From Basidiobolus meristosporus CBS 931.73 (lineage: Eukaryota; Fungi; Basidiobolomycota), in assembly GCA_002104905.1 (NCBI GenBank), contig MCFE01000015.1, positions 1-64,000 of the forward strand: a DNA stretch of 64,000 bases. The letters are read 5' to 3'. Every line of letters starts with the position of its first letter. Position 1 is the stretch's first letter. Positions 15,543 through 56,089 of the stretch are shown one piece after another. Position numbers and translations under genes: made by a program. The notes under the pieces are model-generated. The model worked only from the letters and a program-made list of their open reading frames with translations, was not told the DNA's origin and ran no database searches.

Positions 15543-18020
15543 ATGCCAACAACTACTATGAGTTGTTTGCCGACGCAAAACCATTTCACTCAGAAGGGCT
15601 GCTCAAAGCAGAAACTTGAGCGCAATTTTGCCAGAGGAGGCGCCTCTAGTCCCGATCGGTCCATTTCAACCACTCCACTATTACCTTCTATCCCAACCAC
15701 ACCACTGGCGCAGCCCTTCCCGAACACACCTCACATGTCACATAATGATAACACTCTGGACCATTCAAAACCGCTCGACGGGATCCAGCCAAGCGAGTCT
15801 TCAGAATCACAGGGACACAGGACACCACGCTCAGTTCCGGCCTCCCCTAATCCCCCGTTACAAGACTCCCAATCGCCTCATTTCCTTCCTTGGGGGATGC
15901 AGGGTTTCCCAGGCTCCCCGATTCCACACCCTCAAAGCTGGGGCATGTTGCCTCCACATTTCCCCGCCAATGCTTCTCCAGTGCCGATGATGTCTATGTT
16001 GTGGACCAAGATGGACGCAAACGATGCAAACGGGTCGCCAACCTTTACCAACGGTCATATCCCGACCGCGTCCAATTATGGAGGCCAATCAGGGGCTCAA
16101 AGTAGCCCCTCTCAGCCTCCACATGTTTCACCGGTAATGTATTATCCTATTCCCTTTGGTTGGAATGGTGGTGTACAACCCCCCGAATGGTCACACTATG
16201 GAGGGTATGTGCCATATCCGCCGGTCCCTATATTGATCGGGCCTAACGGGTATCCTTTGCCCATGGTCCCTCCCCCAGCAGATGGTTTCAGCTGGCCTGC
16301 CCCTGGCGTGAACTCGGAGAATCCTCGTCAAAGTCCGCTTCCTATTCACCGCCAACCAGAGGTTGCCGAGCAAGCGCCCGTTGACAAGAGCACTGATAAT
16401 GGGCGTACAGTCGGGGAGTCCACTAGCGCCCCACCATCAAAAACCTCTAGCGAAGCCGCAGGCTCATCACAAAACGCCAACGCCAACATGTCACTAGAAA
16501 CTGACCGAATCGTATCCGAATTCAAGGATCTAGCCATCTCTCAAACCAGTGAAACCAATCAACCAGTGCCCGATGTCAAGGTTTCGTCCGTTGAGGATTC
16601 CCAGCATCATTCCAAAGCCCATCCACCGAAGAACGAGAATGGCAACAACCAAGGCCACCGCCACGGCAAAAAGCCATTCCATCGTGGAAGCACTTTCGGC
16701 GAGCAGGGGAAATCCGATCGTTCGTACGGTGCCCGTTCATTCCACCCAAACAGGGGCACTGGCCAGTATGAGGGAAAGCGGGTGCTGGACAAGAGCGACC
16801 CTCGCTACCTCAAAGCAAGGGCCAGATTCATCTCCGTGCTTACGGAGCAGGTGTCGGAGCTGTATTTGAAACTGACTCCGTCCGTAGAGGAGGTGAGCCG
16901 TAGAGAACAGCTTTATTTTCGCATCCATAGCATCTGCGAAGAGCTTTTCCCTGACGCCCAGCTGTTCCAGTTTGGTTCCACCGCCAACGGGTTTGGCTTG
17001 AAAAATGCCGACGTTGACTTCTGCTTGTGCACTGCGGAGAACTCCTCATTGACCGCCGTGGCGTTTGTCGAGCAGCTTGGAAGCGTCTTGAAAGAAAGAG
17101 GAATGGAGAATGTCATGCTTCTCACACGGACCCGCATCCCCATCATCAAGCTTAAGGATCCCGTGAGTGAGTTGAACTGTGACATCGGGTTCAACAATCG
17201 ACTGGCTGTGTACAACACACGCTTGTTGAGAATGTATGCAGAGGTGGACTCCCGAGTGAAGGAGATCGTCGCTATCGTCAAACATTGGGCGAAGAGCAGA
17301 CAGATCAATGAGCCGTATCTCGGAACGCTCAGTTCGTATGCCTACGTTCTAATGATCATTTTCGTTTTGCAACAGCGTGGGGTGCTTCCTTGCCTGCAGC
17401 AGATATGCGAGGGAGAGAAGAAGGAGGTTCTGGTGGACAACTACGACGCCTACTTCTTCGACAACATCACCGATCTACCTAAATATTGGAAGAGTCAGAA
17501 TAATGAATCGCTTGGGGAGTTGCTGTATGAATTTTTCCGTTTCTACGCCAGCGATTTTTCGTACTACGGCTCCGTTGTCAGGTGAGGACCTTTGGCATGA
17601 CGATATGAAAGCTATATTGCTAATCAAATTTCGTTTGTTTGCTCACAGTGTAAGAACCGGGCAGGTCATGAGCAAAGAAGAGAAGGGATGGACAGCAGAG
17701 GTAAGGATCTAAAGAATCGTTTGCACGAGAGTCCAACCGAAGCTAATCGTTCATGTGGAAAGGCCACGCGTGAGTCAGGGGCCTCCCATGTGCAGGATCG
17801 CTACTGGGTATGCATTGAAGATCCGTTTGAAGTGACGCACAACCTTGGACGTCCTGTTAACAAGAATAGCCTCTACACGATCCGAGGAGAGTTCATGAGG
17901 GCTGCCAACATTCTTGGCGGCACGCGGACAAGCACCATTCTTGAGCGGCTGTGTCAAGTGTACGTACCGGAGGAGGAGCCACCCAGAGCGCCACCGGCAC
18001 CACACGAGCGATCCAATTAA
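15543..18020 (+). CDS. CID1: Cid1-family non-canonical nucleotidyltransferase (likely TUTase) with a long low-complexity N-terminus; introns 17582-17648 and 17701-17762
   Basis: FGSTANGFGLKNADVDFC (GS plus DxD), CDIGFNN, GTLSSYAY, ESLGELL and IEDPFEVTHNL motifs; the start could also be the later Met (MSHNDN). Confidence 0.9.
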
Positions 18021-18505: not shown

Positions 18506-19833
18506 ATGTATCGTGTCGGTTTGCAAGCACCTTTGAGGTCGCTCACCTCGAGCCAGCAGGGTGTCGTACAGCTCTCGTAAGTACTGTTTGAACGTTGGAG
18601 AGGCGTCTTTTCAGCTTAGCATTGAACCGATATGCGTTTCTTTTAGATGGACAGTGAGAAGGGTCGTGGCTGCCAATCACAAGTAGGGTGGATGCTTTGT
18701 CGATATCCTCAGCTCGGTTGCTCATCTTCAGTTCCTCTAGCCTATACCGGTTCAAGCACTCATCCGCCATCGACGCTGCCACCATGGGTAAATCTGCAGA
18801 GGTTTCCAAACCAGTGACGTCCTCGACTAGTATCGCCAACTCGTTCGATTTCACCCTGGGCGGCAAGGCGAACGCCACGGCCATGGAGCGCTTCAAGGAG
18901 TTATTGGTGTTCTACAAAAATGGTATAAAGCAAACCTTCTCCAACAAGAAGATGGCCAAGGGGCTGAAGAAGAAGCAGGCGGCTGGCCAAGAATTGACTA
19001 GAAAAGAATACCAACTGGTAAGTATCTGTGCGTCCGACCTTCTCCTGGGCCTTCCCGTAATAATTCGGATTCTCTCGTAGATTTCCAGAGCCTTCGCTGA
19101 TTCTCGGAAGCTCGTCCCATTTGCCTTCTTGTTGGTCCTGTTCCCAGAGGCGATCCCATTTATCTTGGTCTTTGCCCCAAGCGTAGTTCCTTCGACCTGC
19201 ATCACTGAGAAACAGATGGTACAGCTGTATGACAGTCTCATATCCTGGTCTAATCTGACTGATGGATTGCTCTCTAGGAAAACAAAATCAAGAAGGTCAA
19301 CGAGAAGCGCCAAGCCATTGTTCAGAGCGTGTTGGATAGCCTTGAGTCTGGTAGCCATTCGGTAAGATAATCTCAAACATTGGCCGATCATGAGACGAAA
19401 CTAAGGTCCAGCTTTTCTATAGCTCACCAAAGAAGAGTTCCAGAGCCCTGGCGGGATCATGCAGTTAAGCCGTCGCTTTGAAAGCGATTTCCAGTTGAAC
19501 GCGATCCAGCAGATCCAATTGTCCGCTTATTGCCGTTTCATGGGACTGGCGGATTTCGGACCTAGATTTATGCTGGAGCGCCGGTTGTCCAAGCACCTCG
19601 ATTATCTGAGGGAGGATGATGGCTACCTGGCCAAGCAAGGGCTCGGCCAACTCTCAATGGAGGAATTGCGCTTAGCTAATGAAGAGCGCGGCATGAGCTC
19701 CATCGATAAGGATGAGAAGCAGCTGTCCAAGAACCTCCAGACATGGGTTGACCTCCATCTGTCCAGCGATCCTGCCGTACCCAAGGGCCTCATGGTGTTC
19801 AGTAGAATCTTCCAAAACCTTCCCAAGAATTGA
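18506..19833 (+). CDS. LETM1-domain mitochondrial protein (short LETMD1-like form, about 5 exons)
   Basis: Presequence-like MYRVGLQAPLRSL; ELLVFYKNGIK, LTRKEYQL, DSRKLVPF, VVPSTC, YLREDDGYLAKQGLGQLSMEELRLANEERGM. Confidence 0.8.
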
Positions 19834-20118: not shown

Positions 20119-22238
20119 ATGACCGACCGAAAAAGAGCCGAGGGTGTGCAGGAATGGTTAAGTCAGCTACTCACAGATCCCTGGATCTCCCCGACCATAG
20201 CCGCTGGCGAACTGACCAATGACACCTTGGATGATATCAAAGAGCGGTGGAATTTATATGAGACCCAAATCAAACTCGGGGTGATGTTCACCTTGATCGG
20301 GATTAAGAAGAACAGCCTGGCTGAGATGAGCACCAAGATCGAAGAGGTAAAGTTTGGGGAATTTCTTTCGTTTGGAAGAGTTTCGCGTGGTATCCGCGTG
20401 ACGTGCACCTCGAGCGACCACTACGGCGGTTCGTACCTATCAGCTCGCTTGAATCAATAGCGTCTGGTGGATTGTCGGGGTGTTTGGTCAGGAGGGTGTT
20501 GGTAGACATTGGATCCTAAAGATATTAATCCTTTTCCAAATGCTTTAGTTGATTACTCTTGGTGTGGAGGATCCGGATGAATGGGTTCGACTGATCGCTC
20601 AAACATTTCAAGGTTTTACTGCGTCGGGTAGATTCAACCTTGAGCCTCAGGTGTTTGTGGAGCGTTGCACTCAACCTTTGTCTGACTTGAAAGACTCCTG
20701 TAAGTATTGAACGATTGCGTACGCTCAGTTTCGGTTATCCCTATATCGGTTCTCTAATCCAATGTCAAACAGTACAGAAACATGGAGTCGGCTTTCATCC
20801 CAGAGTTTTTGGTTATCTGAACAGTCAAGTGGTGAAGTCATTACAAGTTACCGAGGGGTCAAAGCCGGTAAAGACCCATTTCAAGGTCAAGGGCTCTCAA
20901 GATGCGATTCACGCTAGTCGCCAAGAGAAATTAAAAGCATTCGTAACGACCACGAATCCTACGCCAGCCGGCCCTGCTCCAGGCATAAGCATGGCTAGAC
21001 CCCCTCCAGCTGGAGCTTCGTCATTATTCGTAAACCGCCGAAAGAGCTCGACAAATTCCTTCCTCCGCTCCTCACAACCTAACAAAGGACCTGCCAATGC
21101 CTTTAGTAAAGGTGAGTCCGACAAACCATCGATTCTGTCGAATATTTGCCAATGTATACTTAATTCGCTTGATATAGGTGTCGTTAGTAACAGCGTTGGA
21201 GGATATCAAAGGCAGCAAAGAATACAACTGCTTGATTTGGATGAAGGAAGCTCGATTATAAAGAAACAGGAAGAAACCAAGTTAAAACGACAGCAAGGTA
21301 ATGTATACTAGAATATGATGGCCATGGTGATGTTGTTACTAACGTCACCGCCAAAGATGAGCAATACGAGAAAGAACTCAAACGTCTGAAGCGTAAGACT
21401 GAAGCGGAAGAAAAGAAACAAGCCGAAATAGAAAAGAAGCGAGAAAGAGAAAAGGAGCGTGAAGAGAAGCGAGCCGCCAAAAAGAGAATGGATGAAGAGG
21501 CTCGCGAAGCTAAAGCGGCTGCTAAGGCAGCAGCGGCGGCAGCGGCACTCACTGCTTCGGATGAAGCTGCTGACGGTAAGCTTCCTAAATGATCAATGAA
21601 CTCATCAAGCGATTGTCTAATGTCATCTCGAATTTAGATCCTACCGAACGAGGTTTGGAAACTGATATTAGGTTCCCACTAATGAGCAATAACTTACGGA
21701 TAGCATCTCTAGCTGATGATCAATACAATCCAAATGGCACTGAAGGCCCTGATGACGATAATCCGCTTGGTAAGTTTGTGGCAACAGGAGCATGTTTTAC
21801 ATCAGCTAACTCTCTTACTATCAGGTACACCTGCGCTCCCAGAATCCCCACCTATCGTCAATTCCCCGCCTGAAGCACTACCACCTCAGGCTGAACCCAG
21901 CATAAGCCCACAATTACAACAGACTCAACTTGCTGTGCTACAGAATACAAATGCTCTAAATGAGGAGGACCGTCAACGAATCATCGATTTCCTTTGCGGC
22001 AAGCCAGGTAAACACAGAAGTAACAGACACACACCGATACGAGAACCTAACCCGTTATTTCAATCTAGTCGCAATGCCTCCTAATCATAGTGGTGAGACC
22101 TATCAAATCGTCATGAATGAGGAACAGAAGTTTGACAATCGGACTTCACGCACGGTTCTCGAGCACATCGTGTTCGAAATGAACCTGTCGAATGGACAAT
22201 GGCGCAAACTCCGTAGAAAAAAGACCGTTAATTCTTGA
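20119..22238 (+). CDS. NELFA: Negative elongation factor A (NELF-A/WHSC2) homolog, 8-9 exons
   Basis: Spliced product has WLSQLLTDPWISPTIA, QIKLGVMF, LGVEDPDEWVRLIA, GYLNSQ, KTHFKVK, IQLLDLDE and the C-terminal LNEEDRQRIIDFLCG...IVMNE...VFEMNLSNGQWRKLRRKK. These are collinear with metazoan NELF-A as I recall it (DSDPWV, QYLNK, KHFQL, VKLLDISE, ILGFMAG, VFEMNYATGQWTRFKKYK). Confidence 0.85.
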
Positions 22239-29811: not shown

Positions 29812-30152
29812 TAGATGGTGGCTAGAGACTTTTTAGAATTAAGTTTGATATTGTACCATACCGTTGTTTTTGCCTTAGACAATAAATACAAGATGCTATA
29901 TGGGCGCCTTTGTTCCATGAATCTTATCGGAATGCCGGATATAGCAAAGGCGTATGGCATGGAGTAGAATTTCGTTGAAATATAAAAGTGGAATTCAACT
30001 GCAGTGAAGAATGTGACGTTGAGGATTGCTGAGGCTAGTATTAATTGATTTGTCATTGTATTTCATATTTGAGCAAAGAACCCAAATCATATGACTCCAC
30101 CTGATAATATATATACGCCTTGTAGTACAATGGATTTTTGCCAGCGTCTACC

Positions 30153-31794
30153 ATGCCGGTTACCTTTCACCTTTTGCTGCCGCTGATATTCTTGTTGACC
30201 GTCTTCGGGCCTGGTTTTCAAAGCGTCTCGATATTTCCTTATTTCAGCCTCACCCTCTCACTCTATTACGTTACTCATACTCAGTTTTTCAACCTACTCT
30301 TTCTGAGTCTTGCTTTAAGTCTTGGGTCTACTTTCGCCTACTTGGGGGTGTTACAAAACCATGAATGGGCTTTAGAGGGGATCCTGATTACTATTGGTAG
30401 TTGTTTCTTGATTGGTAGTGTTCTAACGCTACCTTTCGTTATCTATAAAGTGTTTTTGACGCGCTGGAGCAATCTCCACTTATCAACACTTGTTTTCCCT
30501 ATATCCTGGACTGGAGTCTGGATTGTCTATTACTATATCAGCCCTATCGGAAGCTGGGGAAGTTATGCCTATTCGCAATTTGGTATCGAGCCAATTGTCC
30601 AGCTTTCTTCAATTGCTGGTATTTCAGCTATCGATTTCTTGTTATCCTGGTCTGCTTCGGTCTTCAATCTTCTGCTGAATTGGGAATACTTCAACTCCTT
30701 TCAAACGATTTCTGGGGAAGAGCAGCCACTGTTGGCTACACAGCAGAGAGACCGTTCTTCACCGGCAGAAATCAAGCTTCCATGGAAAAAACTGACCACA
30801 CCAGTTGGTATTTACCTCTCGGCTGTCATCGTTTTGTTCTCTTATGGAGCGGCACGACACAACATCCTGCCAGGGTCATTCTATATGAAATTCATTGATC
30901 ATGCCATTGTGCCGACTGTCAAACTGGGCTGTGTCATTGGCAACAATATTGAATCAAAGCAGTCCGATTACTTCGATCAAACTCGCGATTTGGCAAACAA
31001 AGGTGGAAATATCATTATTTGGTCGGAATCTGCTGTCTCGGTCGAGAATCCGAAGAGTTATGATAGCCTGATGAACCAGGCACGCAACGTTTCCGCAACA
31101 TACGGAATCTACCTTGGTGTTACTTACAACAAGCAATACCCAGGGGAGAAGTATTCCCAGAACATGGTGACATTGTTTGATCCAAAAGGGCAAATTGCGT
31201 ACAAGTATCAGAAGTCTCACCCAGTTGTAATAGTTGAGAGTCATATCGCCCCTGGACCCAAAGTTATCCCGTATGTCGATACTCCGGAATATGGCCGTCT
31301 CGCAAGTGCTATCTGTTTTGATTTGGACTTCAATACGTTCATGCGACAGGCTGGAGAAAACGAGGTTGATTTTCTTTTGCAACCTTCCTGGACTTGGGGT
31401 AATTATCATGGTGGTTTTCGCTGTCAGTACCATGTATGTTTACTTGGATATTTCGATTTTAACAGGTCCTATCGGAAAATATCATTCCGAAATCCAGTCT
31501 TTCCGTGCAGTTGAGAATGGAATGAACTTGCTTCGTTGTAGCTCATGGTCCCCAAGTACGGTTTATGACCCGTTCCATCACATTTATGCGTACAAACAGA
31601 ACCTTGGGGTTGGCTCTATGTTGGCCGAAGTGCCTTTACGTCGTCATACCAAGACCTTATACACCATCTTCGGTGATTTGTTTGCCTGGTGCTGCTTTGC
31701 CGCGACCCTTTTATATGTCACTGTTTCATGGATCCCATTGGCCACAATAGGGAAATGGCCTGCTCTTGTACAGCTTCTCAATGCTAAGCAGTAG
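30153..31794 (+). CDS. Apolipoprotein N-acyltransferase (Lnt)-like protein: polytopic membrane domain plus nitrilase-fold domain; one intron near 31400-31468
   Basis: GSWGSYAYSQ, IVQLSSIAGISAIDFL, IIIWSE (Glu), YQKSHPV (Lys), ICFD (Cys), QPSWTW, FRAVENG and a C-terminal TM; the 5' end may include an upstream exon. Confidence 0.85.
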
Positions 31795-48017: not shown

Positions 48018-51000
48018 TCATAAGTCGCTCGTATCGATCAATTCGTTCTGGATTTGTCGGTGAATGAAGCACAAGTAGTCTACATATGTCATGTTGTCGT
48101 TGTTTTTGTCTTCCACCATGAGATTGATGAACTCCAGTTCTGACTGATCCATTTGATGGCGGACTATTTGTAGGCTTGGATAGCGTGATTTATCGTCTTG
48201 AAGTCGGGCTATAAGCGCGCGGATCTGGTGGGATGTGGCATTCTCTAGCTTAGGAAGGCTTTGGAGCTTGGGATTGATCTCTTGTAGCGTACCCACTCCG
48301 AAAACCTGTTCCAAAAACTCCTTGGGGATCTGGCTGCCTATCCAAAGCATCAAGGTTAATCCATTTTCGACCAAATAGGCTCCTGTGAGCTCCATGCGGG
48401 CGTATGAATCTCGGATCATTGGTGGCATCGAGAGGATGTTGTGCTCGTTGGGGACACAAGCATTTTCGGGAAGCGTGTGGAGTGGAATAAGGTGTGGATA
48501 TAGGAGTGATGTTGATTGGGCAACACCGATGCTATTCAGGTAGCGCATGAACGATATACGTGAATCAACCGAAATATCAACCCCATTTCTGAATGCTCTA
48601 GACTTGAGGATCGTGAGGGCGTACAGCGGGAACAACTTGAAGGCCTCCGGCAAAATCAACTGACCTGGGGATGTGGAGGTAGCGCAATGCTTTCGATAGG
48701 CCGCCAGTATCCTAACGCATTTTTGCGTCAGTTTTTCTCGGACCGTTTTCAGAGGGGATACGAGACTTTGAGCAACCGCTTCCTTACAAAGCAGATTGAT
48801 GGTAGTATCCATTTCAGCATATCTGAACATATTCCCCATCAATGTGGTGACAGGCACGCTCAAGTTATGCAGACGGATTCTTCGTTGTCCAGAAGAAGTA
48901 GTATACAATAATGCACATTGGAATGTGGCGTCTGTCTTTTCATCGACCTTGGCATCATGCTTAAGTAAGACTGCCACACTCTTGTCACAGTCCAATCCAC
49001 CGAACTCTACGTCAGTAGCATTTCTCATGTAGAAGTTTCCAAAATGGTCATCCAAGCTGAATCCATTAGAACAACGGACTCTCATGATTCCATTGAACCC
49101 GAATTTTCGACTGACATTGCGCTGAAGCTCTCGGGTGAATTTCACTCCATCTTTTTGCGGGTTGAAGTTCATGAAATGATGGATGTCGCCACCAGTCGAG
49201 CTGGCCAAAGCCCCAATCGTTGCAACATCCACGTATGAGTTGGGGAATAGAAATAGATCAACACTGATGCCAGACTCAACCATTTCCGTAGTCAAACTCT
49301 TGTAGAATGTGTCTTGAGGAGAATACATGGTATACTCTTTGTCAGTTCCATTTAGCTTGGGATCATCTCTATTCTTCAAAGTACCGGGCCCGAAAATTGG
49401 CAACGATGTATGGAACGCAAATATCTTCCCACCGAGATCTTTCTAACAATTCAATCATAATCAGAGACTACCTGTGAAAGAACAGCGGGTAACCGGATTA
49501 CTAACCAATGCCATATACGCAGATTGCATTGCTGCCCCAAGTACAGGCTCAACCACGCGATTGTTGGCGAACATAGAGGGTAAACTCTCAAGTAGATTCT
49601 CGATAATATCTCTACATCAGTATTCCATTGAACAAGTTAGCAAACTAGCGAAATCCAAACATAATACTACGTAAAGCACCTTGATTCCATAGGGTCGACG
49701 AGAAAACCTTCATTCAAAGGTACAAACATGTCAAACACGTCAGGAACGATCATCATCTGAGCTTGCTCCAGATTCGGCTATCCAGGTTCACGTTAGATAA
49801 AGGATAATGCTGAATGAAAAACAATTTACTCTTACCGAAAGATTGTAGAAATGAACACTCCTATCATAGGTCATGATGCCCACCCTGACTCCTGGCTCGA
49901 TCCCCTTGCCGGAGTAAATGGCTTCGCGAACTGCTTGGACACATGATTGCAGCATTCCACTTTGGATAGAGTTCCAGGTGACATCAATCGCAAATATGAA
50001 TGAGGCGGGGACTGGCGGGCGGTTACAGTAATCCTATAACAAATTGTGGAAAAGCCAAGATGTTAAGCACAGCAAGATAATTGAAAATAATCAGGCATTT
50101 CAATACGGTACCTTGGTAGCAGCAAATTCCACACTGCCAAACCTCAACTCTGGTCTTGCTTCGATATCCAATCGACGGCCATTCATATCCAAATTGCAAA
50201 AATATTCCTCGGGAACTTCAGAGTTGAAGGTTGTTGGGTTAACATCGTTTCGAAGCAAGCAAGTATCTAATTTAGGGTACCTTCATTGGCAAATTGGCAG
50301 AGATTACAGATAAACTTGCGACCACCATCAACAAACGTGACAAAGGGATTGATGTATGCCTGACAACGATTACAACGAATAGGCCCATTCTCACCGAAGT
50401 CGACTAGCTGAAGTGGGGCCTACATCGATTTATGGTGAGATGATTAGCAATCGATGAAAAACGTGGTCGAATACGGATCTAGATTAAATGTACCTCATCA
50501 CTACGTAACTCTGCCAGAGGTTGTATAATCATACCTAGCGGTAAATCGGAATTATGTAGCAAGTCCGTTGTAGCCGGGACATTGTACATGGTCATACGCA
50601 TAAATCTTGGGTTAGAGCAACCTATATCCCAAGAATGGTTAATTTCTCCACCCAACTAAAGAAAGGGTTCACTCTTACCCTCGTCAATAGCCTTAAAATC
50701 ACTACTGGCCAGGGGAACACTGGTTCTTGAGTAGGTCATGTATGGAGCATCTACAAAATTCTTTTGATTTTGCTCCTGGACAGCAATCGGGGATGGAATT
50801 TGGTCAGGATCAATTCGATTTCTCGGTGGATTCTCCATGGTAGGTCTACCAATGTTAGGGGGGACCGGTTGGTTGAGTGGTGGCATCATTGCCTGTGGCT
50901 GACCTTGAATAGGTCTGAAGTTTGCCATGGCTGGATTTTGAACAGGTGCTTGGCTTCCCATAGGGCTATACAATGATGGAGCCTGTTGCTGCGAGGGTAA

Positions 51001-52957: not shown

Positions 52958-54460
52958 ATGGGCGTTAGCAAAGACACTACTTCTCAAACTCTTCAATTGC
53001 CTAATGGAGGCTCCATCCAAGTGAACACTAACTTGTTCATCAATGGTGAATTTGTTGCTTCCCAGAGTGGTAAATCCTTTGATACCGTCAATCCTGTAAC
53101 TGAGGAAGTTATCTGCCAAGTGGCTGAGGCTGACGAAAAGGATATTGATATTGCTGTGAAGGCTGCCACCGATGCATTCTACAACGGCTGGGTCAACACC
53201 ACTGGCCCTGAGCGTGGTCGCTTGCTTTACAAGTTGGCTGATTTGTTGGAGGAGCACGCTGATGAATTAGCTGCCCTTGAGTCCCTCGACAACGGTAAGA
53301 CTGTCGCCGTTGCCAAGACTGCTGATATTCGCCTTGCAATTGAATGCTATCGCTACTATGCTGGTTGGGCCGACAAGATCCACGGCAAGGTTATTTCAAC
53401 CGCCAATCCTGAACAATTCGCCTACACTCGCCATGAGCCTATTGGTGTTGTAGGTTGCATTATTCCATGGAATTTCCCTCTCTTGATGCAATCCTGGAAG
53501 CTTGGCCCTGCTCTTGCTACCGGCAACACCGTCGTTATGAAGCTTGCTGAGCAGACCCCCTTGTCTGGCTTGCATGTTGCCCGTTTCATTAAGGAAGCCG
53601 GATTCCCGCCAGGTGTCGTCAACATCATCAACGGTTTTGGTAAAGTTGCTGGAGCTGCTTTGGCTTCCCACAAGGATGTCCACAAGATTGCCTTTACCGG
53701 CTCTACCATTACTGGACGTACCATCATGAAGGCCGCCGCTGATAGCAACCTCAAGAAGATCTCCCTTGAATTGGGAGGTAAGAGTCCCAACATCGTTTTC
53801 GCCGACGCCGATCTTGAGAAGGCTGTGGAATGGGCCAGCACTGGTATCTTCTTCAACCATGGACAAACTTGCTGTGCTGGTTCGAGAATCTATGTTCAAG
53901 AAGATGTGTATGACGAATTCTTGGAGAAATTCAAGCAGAAGACTAACTCCATCAAACTTGGAGATCCATTCCATCCCGAAACCACCCAAGGTCCATTGGT
54001 TTCTAAGCTTCAATTCGACCGCGTTATGGGATACATCGAAGCCGGCAAAAAAGAAGGCGCCACCTGCCAATTGGGAGGAGGCAGATGGGGCAAGGTTGGA
54101 TACTTCGTTGAGCCTACCATCTTCACTGATGTTCGTGAAGACATGACAATCATGAAAGAAGAAATCTTCGGCCCTGTTGTAGCCATTACCAAGTTCAAAG
54201 ATGAGAAAGAGGTAATCGAGAAGGCTCATTGCACTGAATACGGCTTAGCTGCTGCCGTCTTCACTAAGGATGTTTCCAAGGCTATTCGTATCTCCAACAG
54301 CCTCCAGGCCGGTACCGTTTGGGTCAATTGCTACAATACTTTCGATGCTAGCACACCATTTGGTGGTTACAAAGAATCCGGAATTGGCCGCGAATTGGGC
54401 AAGTATGCTTTGGATTTGTACACCCAAGTCAAATCAGTCAAGATCAACCTTGCTGGATAA
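52958..54460 (+). CDS. NAD-dependent aldehyde dehydrogenase (ALDH1/2 type), intronless, 500 aa
   Basis: IIPWNFPL, FTGST, LELGGKSP, GQTCCAGSR, EEIFGPV, FGGYKESGIGRE; strong codon bias. Confidence 0.97.
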   Translation: MGVSKDTTSQTLQLPNGGSIQVNTNLFINGEFVASQSGKSFDTVNPVTEEVICQVAEADEKDIDIAVKAATDAFYNGWVNTTGPERGRLLYKLADLLEEHADELAALESLDNGKTVAVAKTADIRLAIECYRYYAGWADKIHGKVISTANPEQFAYTRHEPIGVVGCIIPWNFPLLMQSWKLGPALATGNTVVMKLAEQTPLSGLHVARFIKEAGFPPGVVNIINGFGKVAGAALASHKDVHKIAFTGSTITGRTIMKAAADSNLKKISLELGGKSPNIVFADADLEKAVEWASTGIFFNHGQTCCAGSRIYVQEDVYDEFLEKFKQKTNSIKLGDPFHPETTQGPLVSKLQFDRVMGYIEAGKKEGATCQLGGGRWGKVGYFVEPTIFTDVREDMTIMKEEIFGPVVAITKFKDEKEVIEKAHCTEYGLAAAVFTKDVSKAIRISNSLQAGTVWVNCYNTFDASTPFGGYKESGIGRELGKYALDLYTQVKSVKINLAG

Positions 54461-54835
54461 GTAGCACAAATTCAACAGCATATGCACATACCTACGTAAT
54501 CAACTGTGAATAAATTATATTGTAAACCCAATGCATCGGAAATGGACAAGAAGACACAATAGAGGCATTCGGTTATACAATTGCCTCATTCAATTGTTGA
54601 GGCCTCCTGCTCTGTAATCATCAACGTAACGTTGGATACTAGATAAATGTATTAATGCTGCCAATCTTTCCGTATTAATCGTCAACATTGTTGATTGGCG
54701 CATTTGGCACCATTGCTTTAAATTACATTTCCCAAAACGTAGTGTTTTCCCACAAAGATTGTGGAAAGAAATTTTCGAGATTTTCATAGATTCCAAGGAT
54801 TTCCTAGGTACTGCTCTTGTAACTTGGTGTTGGAC

Positions 54836-56089
54836 ATGATGCATGGATTGAATAAATGTATTCCAAACCGACGCAGTATTCTCCATCGTTTTTACAGTAG
54901 ATTAGGCCATTTTGATTCTCCCCGCTCGCTTTCTACCACCAAGGAGCAGACAAAGGCCCACATCGCTTTGAAAGTTGCTTATTTGGGTTGGGATTACCAT
55001 GGGTTTGCACGACACAATCTTCTTCCCACTATCGAAGGAAACTTGTTCACTGCTTTAGAAAAAACCCACCTGATCCAGTCCATCGAGCATGCGAAATATA
55101 GCCGCTGTGGCCGTACTGATGCTGGTGTCAGTGCTTTTAGCCAGGTGATTGGTCTGGAGATAAATCAAAAGTCACCTCAACAAACAGGCAATAGGATTGT
55201 AAGCATGCTGAACTCTAATCTCCCTAAAGATATTCGGGTCCTGAATTGGGCACGCACCGAATCCCATTTCGATGCAAGACATGACTGTCTCTCCAGAACC
55301 TACAAGTATTATTTTCCACGGCAGAATTTGAACCTGGAATTGATGCAGAAAGCAGCCGAAAAGTTTGTCGGTACCCAAGACTTTCGAAATTTCTGCAAAG
55401 TTCGAGGGGCAAAGCAACAGTCGGAATACAGAAGGACTATTTATCAGGTTGCAATCGAGCCTTCCAAGACACTCGCTCACTTGACAAGCCCAGAGCGACA
55501 GCTGTGTGAACTCACCATTCGTGGGCGTTCCTTTCTATGGCACCAAGTGCGTTGTATGACTGCTATACTATTCCTGGTTGGCCAAGGCTTGGAATCCCCC
55601 AGTATCGTAGATTATTTATTAAATATAGAGAGTACTCCCTCGAAACCGCACTATGAAATGGCATGCGAAACACCCCTAGTGTTGTATGATTCAGAGTATA
55701 AGCATCTAAAATGGAATACCTCGACTACCCCAGATTTAGTCGCCATGTACTGGCTACAGCGACACCTGGAGCGTGAGTGGCAACGCAAGGTTAATGAAGC
55801 CGTTGTATTAGAGAATCTGCTGGATTCGTTTGGCCGAACGATAGTCACTCCACCGTCGCTTGGAAGCAGTCTATCTTGGAGTGAGTATTGGGAGAAAGGA
55901 GAGGTCCAAGTGAGAGGTGAGGGTACTGATGTTATATTAGGAGGAGGCAAAGATAGCCGGGTTAGAAAATACAAATCGCTCACAGAGCGTCAATGTGGGT
56001 TACCTGTAGAGGAACTCAACAAGCGATTCTTGGCACGGAAGAAGGGACAAGCCCCCTCGTATGTAAGATCCTTAATAAAACCTAATTAG
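54836..56089 (+). CDS. PUS3: tRNA pseudouridine synthase, TruA family (Pus3/Deg1-like), intronless
   Basis: IALKVAYLGWDYHG, CGRTDAGVSA, FDAR, DFRNFCK, GRSFLWHQVRCM; Arg/Ser-rich N-terminus. Confidence 0.88.
   Translation: MMHGLNKCIPNRRSILHRFYSRLGHFDSPRSLSTTKEQTKAHIALKVAYLGWDYHGFARHNLLPTIEGNLFTALEKTHLIQSIEHAKYSRCGRTDAGVSAFSQVIGLEINQKSPQQTGNRIVSMLNSNLPKDIRVLNWARTESHFDARHDCLSRTYKYYFPRQNLNLELMQKAAEKFVGTQDFRNFCKVRGAKQQSEYRRTIYQVAIEPSKTLAHLTSPERQLCELTIRGRSFLWHQVRCMTAILFLVGQGLESPSIVDYLLNIESTPSKPHYEMACETPLVLYDSEYKHLKWNTSTTPDLVAMYWLQRHLEREWQRKVNEAVVLENLLDSFGRTIVTPPSLGSSLSWSEYWEKGEVQVRGEGTDVILGGGKDSRVRKYKSLTERQCGLPVEELNKRFLARKKGQAPSYVRSLIKPN

Follow-up and report, generated by a model that had tools for sequence, protein, structure and literature searches.

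Background

Textbook accounts usually present negative elongation factor (NELF) as a pausing factor of animals that is missing from yeasts. Human NELF-A (NELFA/WHSC2; PDB 5L3X chain A, 6GML chain U), the subunit of interest here, comprises two ordered modules joined by a flexible arm: an N-terminal helical domain and a C-terminal microdomain of two helices and three strands with a FEMN..GQW signature (residues 440-524). Its HDAg-like Pol II-binding region, as defined by PROSITE PS51838, spans residues 89-248. The human C-terminal domain binds the PHD finger of INTS12, with Arg453 inserting into a pocket, as described in a 2026 preprint (Blears et al., 10.64898/2026.06.30.735463) that reports conservation of the INTS12 contact for human, Xenopus and Drosophila only. 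Beyond animals, NELF-A and NELF-C homologues were noted in Dictyostelium and Chlorella by Vos et al. 2016 (PMC4940160), with NELF regions beyond the crystallised core mostly diverging in single-celled organisms. More recently, Chivu et al. (10.1101/2023.02.19.529146) described NELF-A homologues in some unicellular eukaryotes, strong evidence for NELF-E in metazoans only, and an HDAg profile for which InterProScan made no calls outside animals and Capsaspora; resolution in their NELF-A tree is poor, and they draw no firm functional conclusion for NELF-A-like proteins.

The window analysed here, a 64,000-nucleotide stretch of the Basidiobolus meristosporus CBS 931.73 genome, contains a spliced NELF-A gene at positions 20119-22238 of the plus strand. 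The species belongs to the phylum Basidiobolomycota. The gene very probably encodes the NELF-A orthologue of this fungus; NELF-A is one subunit of the negative elongation factor, which binds Pol II. The protein itself is already known from databases and published supplementary data: its UniRef name is "NELF-A N-terminal domain-containing protein", and its accession, ORY06555.1, appears in the NELF-A-like FASTA file, alignment and tree of Chivu et al. (10.1101/2023.02.19.529146; PMC11482795). The novelty implied by the first-pass annotation of this stretch, made from sequence alone, therefore fails. Our literature search found no main-text discussion of NELF in Basidiobolus. What we add is modest, namely a checked gene model, the conservation of the C-terminal microdomain from fungus to human, and the lack of conservation of the arginine that contacts INTS12.

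Gene structure

Splicing of nine exons, from the start codon at 20119 to the stop codon at 22236-22238, yields the 493-residue deposited protein ORY06555.1 (P0027; locus tag K493DRAFT_310502) with a 100% match. All eight introns are GT-AG, most with a CTAAC/CTAAT-like branch site close to the 3' end; intron 1 measures 202 nt and the others 55-73 nt, and the introns are lower in G+C than the coding sequence. The 493-codon frame is unbroken across these canonical introns. The spliced gene proposed in the first-pass annotation is thus borne out, with exact start and stop, and the motifs that it quoted are all present: LGVEDPDEWVRLIA in exon 2, YLN and THF in exon 3, QLLDLDE in exon 4, VFEMNLSNGQW in the last exon and, for its charged, Ala-rich linker, a K/E/A-rich stretch in exon 5. 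The features of the gene are listed below.

20119..20346, plus strand: exon 1, aa 1-76; start codon and first half of the NELF-A_N domain
20549..20699, plus strand: exon 2, aa 77-126; contains LGVEDPDEWVRLIA; NELF-A_N continues
20773..21111, plus strand: exon 3, aa 127-239; the N-terminal domain ends here
20814-20822, plus strand: YLN, aa 141-143, exon 3
20874-20882, plus strand: THF, aa 161-163, exon 3
21024-21071, plus strand: SLF...FLR motif in a disordered stretch, exon 3
21178..21297, plus strand: exon 4, aa 240-279; QLLDLDE; the long helix begins
21204-21245, plus strand: YQRQQRIQLLDLDE block, exon 4
21237-21550, plus strand: K/E/R/A-rich helix predicted by AlphaFold2, aa 260-344
21357..21575, plus strand: exon 5, aa 280-352; segment rich in K, E and A, predicted as a single long alpha-helix
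21638..21652, plus strand: exon 6, a 15-nt micro-exon of the deposited model, required for the exact P0027 sequence
21713..21769, plus strand: exon 7, aa 358-376; acidic disordered linker, pLDDT below 50
21825..22007, plus strand: exon 8, aa 377-437; Pro-rich linker, with both helices of the C-terminal microdomain
21962-21964, plus strand: Glu423, exon 8, aligned with human Arg453
22069..22238, plus strand: exon 9, aa 438-493 and stop; the C-terminal microdomain's sheet of three strands; contains VFEMNLSNGQWRKLRRKK

Support for the splice junctions is indirect and comes from the open frame, from Pfam colinearity across intron 1 and from the higher conservation of exons than of introns. Exon 1 alone matches positions 15-70 of the Pfam NELF-A_N profile (21.5 bits; the same exon alone found no match in the PDB) and exon 2 alone matches positions 72-103, a colinear order that speaks for the splice junction at the 202-nt intron. 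Against two loci of B. ranarum, exon identity is 69% and 75%, compared with 47% and 46% for introns, a difference of about 25 points. The weakest part of the predicted gene model is the 15-nt micro-exon together with the 60-nt intron that follows it (21653-21712); as both lie in the poorly conserved acidic linker, the junction there is the least certain. This intron is in frame and stop-free, and an eight-exon, 513-codon model that retains it differs from the deposited one in nothing else; we prefer the deposited nine-exon model.

Similarity to human NELF-A

The protein matches the Pfam NELF-A_N family (PF23553) at 48.6 bits, well over the curated cutoff of 27 (E 1.1e-12), over positions 15-142 of the 146-position profile. 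When all PDB sequences were searched, human NELF-A chains were the sole significant matches (E 1.8e-11; next, unrelated match 0.01), in two colinear stretches that pair residues 19-169 with human 20-169, YLN and HF included, and residues 379-490 with human 403-522. Within these stretches, exon 3 aligns to human residues 121-169, exon 8 to 440-470 and exon 9 to VFEMNYATGQWTRFKKYK. A profile built from the 15-member fungal family reached human NELF-A among the PDB sequences with an E-value of 3.5e-38, aligning continuously with residues 12-234 and 348-524. The profile search that the first-pass annotation had suggested is thus significant at both termini, the C-terminal domain profile giving E 4.6e-10. 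In a word-indexed protein search, the family profile and the C-terminal region retrieved fungal relatives only and no metazoan NELF-A, so the human comparison rests on the PDB sequences.

By AlphaFold2, the predicted model consists of a confident helical N-terminal domain (pLDDT 70-92), a disordered stretch, a long helix at residues 260-344 and a compact C-terminal domain. A Foldseek search of the full model against the PDB returned NELF-A chains as all of its best five matches (9j0n_U, 6gml_U, 5l3x_A, 8uhd_U and 8uha_U), with E-values from 3.7e-8 to 3e-7 and target TM scores of 0.47-0.54; the next match stood at 0.024. The N-terminal domain is accordingly modelled in the fold of the NELF-A/NELF-C crystal structure. 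Pfam, the sequence and profile matches at both ends and the fold matches together support a full-length NELF-A homologue, as the first-pass annotation had read it.

The fungal and human proteins have the same two ordered modules in the same order, with a flexible arm in both, and are of similar length at 493 and 528 residues. They differ in several respects. Identity in the N-terminal domain is only about 22-24% in structural alignments; the Pro/Ser/Thr-rich linker of the human protein contrasts with a K/E-rich predicted single helix of about 85 residues in the fungal lineage; and the human protein has a NELF-E partner, whereas none is known in fungi.

Several candidates were discarded on the way. 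Two proteins retrieved in the exon 1 search, P0003 (4395 aa) and P0019 (977 aa, with bacterial-type DUF7507 and SdrD domains), are spurious repeat matches without a NELF-A_N domain, and Pfam matches of single pieces to SepF, Gp54, TAF4 and Tho2 were weak, all under the cutoff, and were treated as chance.

Motifs of the flexible arm

The first-pass annotation had placed the YLN, HF and LLD motifs on a conserved Pol II-contacting tentacle. In the alignment with human NELF-A, YLN and THF fall on QYLN and VKHF, at roughly residues 147-160, and the crystallised NELF-A/NELF-C core of 5L3X is matched to residues 20-168 of the fungal protein. Since the two motifs thus fall inside the NELF-C-binding core, they do not belong to the tentacle. 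The LLD motif fares no better as an element shared with human: a profile of the LLD block compared with human residues 251-285 matched KLLDISE at 0.9 bits, a score equalled by 78 of 2000 shuffles and not significant. The equivalence of RIQLLD and human KLLDISE is unproven.

Among fungi, the flexible arm carries short conserved motifs, HF, SLF...FLR and RIQLLD. Residues F163 and R176, encoded by exon 3, are invariant among the 15 fungal homologues, and Q256 and D259 of the RIQLLD block, encoded by exon 4, are invariant across the fungal family. Downstream of this block, the predicted helix at residues 260-344 (block pLDDT 70-86) contains 18 K, 19 E, 9 R and 16 A among its 85 residues. The helix is predicted to be uninterrupted, and this stretch is common to the fungal homologues. 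In the predicted models, this K/E-rich segment may be a single-alpha-helix spacer that replaces the Pro-rich linker of animal NELF-A.

The C-terminal microdomain

The C-terminal microdomain (residues 405-490) starts at position 21908, in exon 8, and is predicted to comprise two helices and three strands. Modelled alone, the domain has a pLDDT of 87. Its sequence alone matches human NELF-A 444-523 with an E-value of 1.5e-4, and its profile matches human residues 440-524 at 4.6e-10, the next match standing at 0.025. Searched against the ESM Atlas, the model gave an arthropod NELF-A cluster as its best match (TM 0.75 over 93 residues); Foldseek found no analogue of the model in the PDB, with a best E-value of 0.08. 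By sequence, profile and predicted fold, the Basidiobolus protein has the microdomain that occupies residues 431-528 of human NELF-A.

The residue by which human NELF-A engages the INTS12 PHD finger is a different matter. Human Arg453 aligns to Glu423 in B. meristosporus and to a glycine in B. ranarum, and the equivalent position varies across fungi, so the INTS12-type arginine is absent. Judged from these alignments, the microdomain is ancient, but the Arg453-INTS12 contact itself is not conserved.

A possible three-subunit NELF

The retention of a NELF complex in Basidiobolus is plausible in light of published candidates for its other subunits. The supplement of Chivu et al. (10.1101/2023.02.19.529146) includes among its final candidates a B. 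meristosporus NELF-B, with a COBRA1 domain scoring 265.3 bits, and a NELF-C/D, the TH1 protein ORX90174.1. On sequence grounds, the most likely role of the Basidiobolus NELF-A is within a three-subunit NELF. The N-terminal domain (residues ~1-170) would pair with NELF-C/D, as in human, and assembly with the NELF-C/D and NELF-B homologues of the same species would give a three-subunit NELF without NELF-E. Such a complex would bind Pol II early in elongation, and the arm and C-terminal microdomain of NELF-A would make contacts with the polymerase or with partner factors. Compared with animals, its effect on the residence of Pol II near promoters would probably be weaker or more dispersed.

The principal alternative is that the protein has NELF-A ancestry and is not a functional pausing subunit. 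Under the model of Chivu et al., it would be the heir of a pre-existing protein whose function is unknown, the HDAg-like region having been gained only on the animal stem. This view would account for the restriction of the PROSITE HDAg profile to animals and Capsaspora, and for the placement of ORY06555.1 in the "NELF-A-like" set of Chivu et al. and not among their "final candidates"; it is also in keeping with the divergence at human Arg453 and with an LLD region that, lying near the human Pol II-binding segment, gives no significant alignment. However, the continuous alignment of the fungal profile with human residues 12-234 spans most of the HDAg-like region (89-248), the C-terminal microdomain is conserved too, NELF-B and NELF-C/D co-occur in B. 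meristosporus according to the published supplement, and nothing supports an alternative function. We regard this alternative as highly improbable. That the gene is an unexpressed or decaying copy, its open frame merely a product of gene prediction, is scarcely credible: the micro-exon and the 60-nt linker intron do lack conservation support, but the frame is intact over eight canonical introns, exons exceed introns in conservation at both B. ranarum loci, and the Basidiobolus protein keeps the family-invariant residues.

Action within a three-subunit NELF thus remains our preferred reading of the Basidiobolus protein. It is conceivable, if rather unlikely, that the C-terminal microdomain is an ancient opisthokont module, kept in Basidiobolus together with NELF-B, NELF-C/D and at least some Integrator subunits, and that a NELF-E-less, Integrator-coupled checkpoint predates the animal-fungus split. 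If true, a pre-split three-subunit NELF-Integrator promoter-proximal checkpoint could be studied in a fungus.

Distribution of NELF-A in early-diverging fungi

The same architecture is seen in homologues from B. ranarum, Dimargaris (Kickxellomycotina), Mortierellomycotina and Glomeromycotina; Mucorales (Radiomyces, Zychaea) have homologues too, in deposited models that lack the C-terminal microdomain. The early-diverging fungal proteins, from B. ranarum (P0001), Mortierella sp. AM989 (KAF9108668.1, deposited as "Negative elongation factor A"), Rhizophagus, Funneliformis, Gigaspora, Diversispora, Geosiphon and Dimargaris, share the N-terminal domain, the HF, SLF...FLR and RIQ(L/M)LD motifs, the K/E-rich helix and the C-terminal microdomain, with shorter linkers in Basidiobolus. 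The N-terminal NELF-C/D-binding domain is also common to the Basidiobolus protein and the NELF-A-like proteins from Dictyostelium, Chlorella and apicomplexans. The apicomplexan proteins are truncated and without a tentacle (Chivu et al.). In Basidiobolus, the C-terminal microdomain is retained.

NELF-A is thus kept in early-diverging fungi, including Basidiobolus, Mortierella and Glomeromycotina, with NELF-B and NELF-C/D reported for some, which makes these organisms natural test cases for the action of a NELF-E-less NELF on Pol II. Published supplementary data already make their value in this respect apparent.

Related loci and neighbouring genes

A second NELF-A locus was found in B. ranarum on JASJQH010006879.1 (L002:3086-5239). 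Its deposited protein, P0028 (293 aa), begins mid-gene, and tblastn located the N-terminal exons (aa 1-126) upstream of it at 70-84% identity, so the deposited model looks truncated. From the sequence, B. ranarum probably has two full-length NELF-A copies, the second being closer to B. meristosporus NELF-A (86%) than P0001 (74%).

Directly upstream of NELF-A in the window, at 19459-19833 on the plus strand, lies the end of a gene whose product finishes in a ribosome-binding domain of the LETM1 kind (Pfam LETM1_RBD, E 3e-25). A LETM1-like neighbour is also found upstream of NELF-A in B. ranarum (L001:1-660), with a protein kinase gene in between. Further upstream in the window, a 680-residue single open frame (15543-17585, plus strand) has an MTPAP-like central domain together with NTP_transf_2 and PAP_assoc domains, and its product looks like a non-canonical poly(A) or poly(U) polymerase of the Cid1/TUTase type. 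Elsewhere in the window, Pfam identified ordinary housekeeping genes: a carbon-nitrogen hydrolase (30138-31514, plus strand), a piece of the Sec23/Sec24 family (48018-49403, minus strand), an aldehyde dehydrogenase (52958-54460, plus strand; 628 bits) and a tRNA pseudouridine synthase (54761-56089, plus strand).
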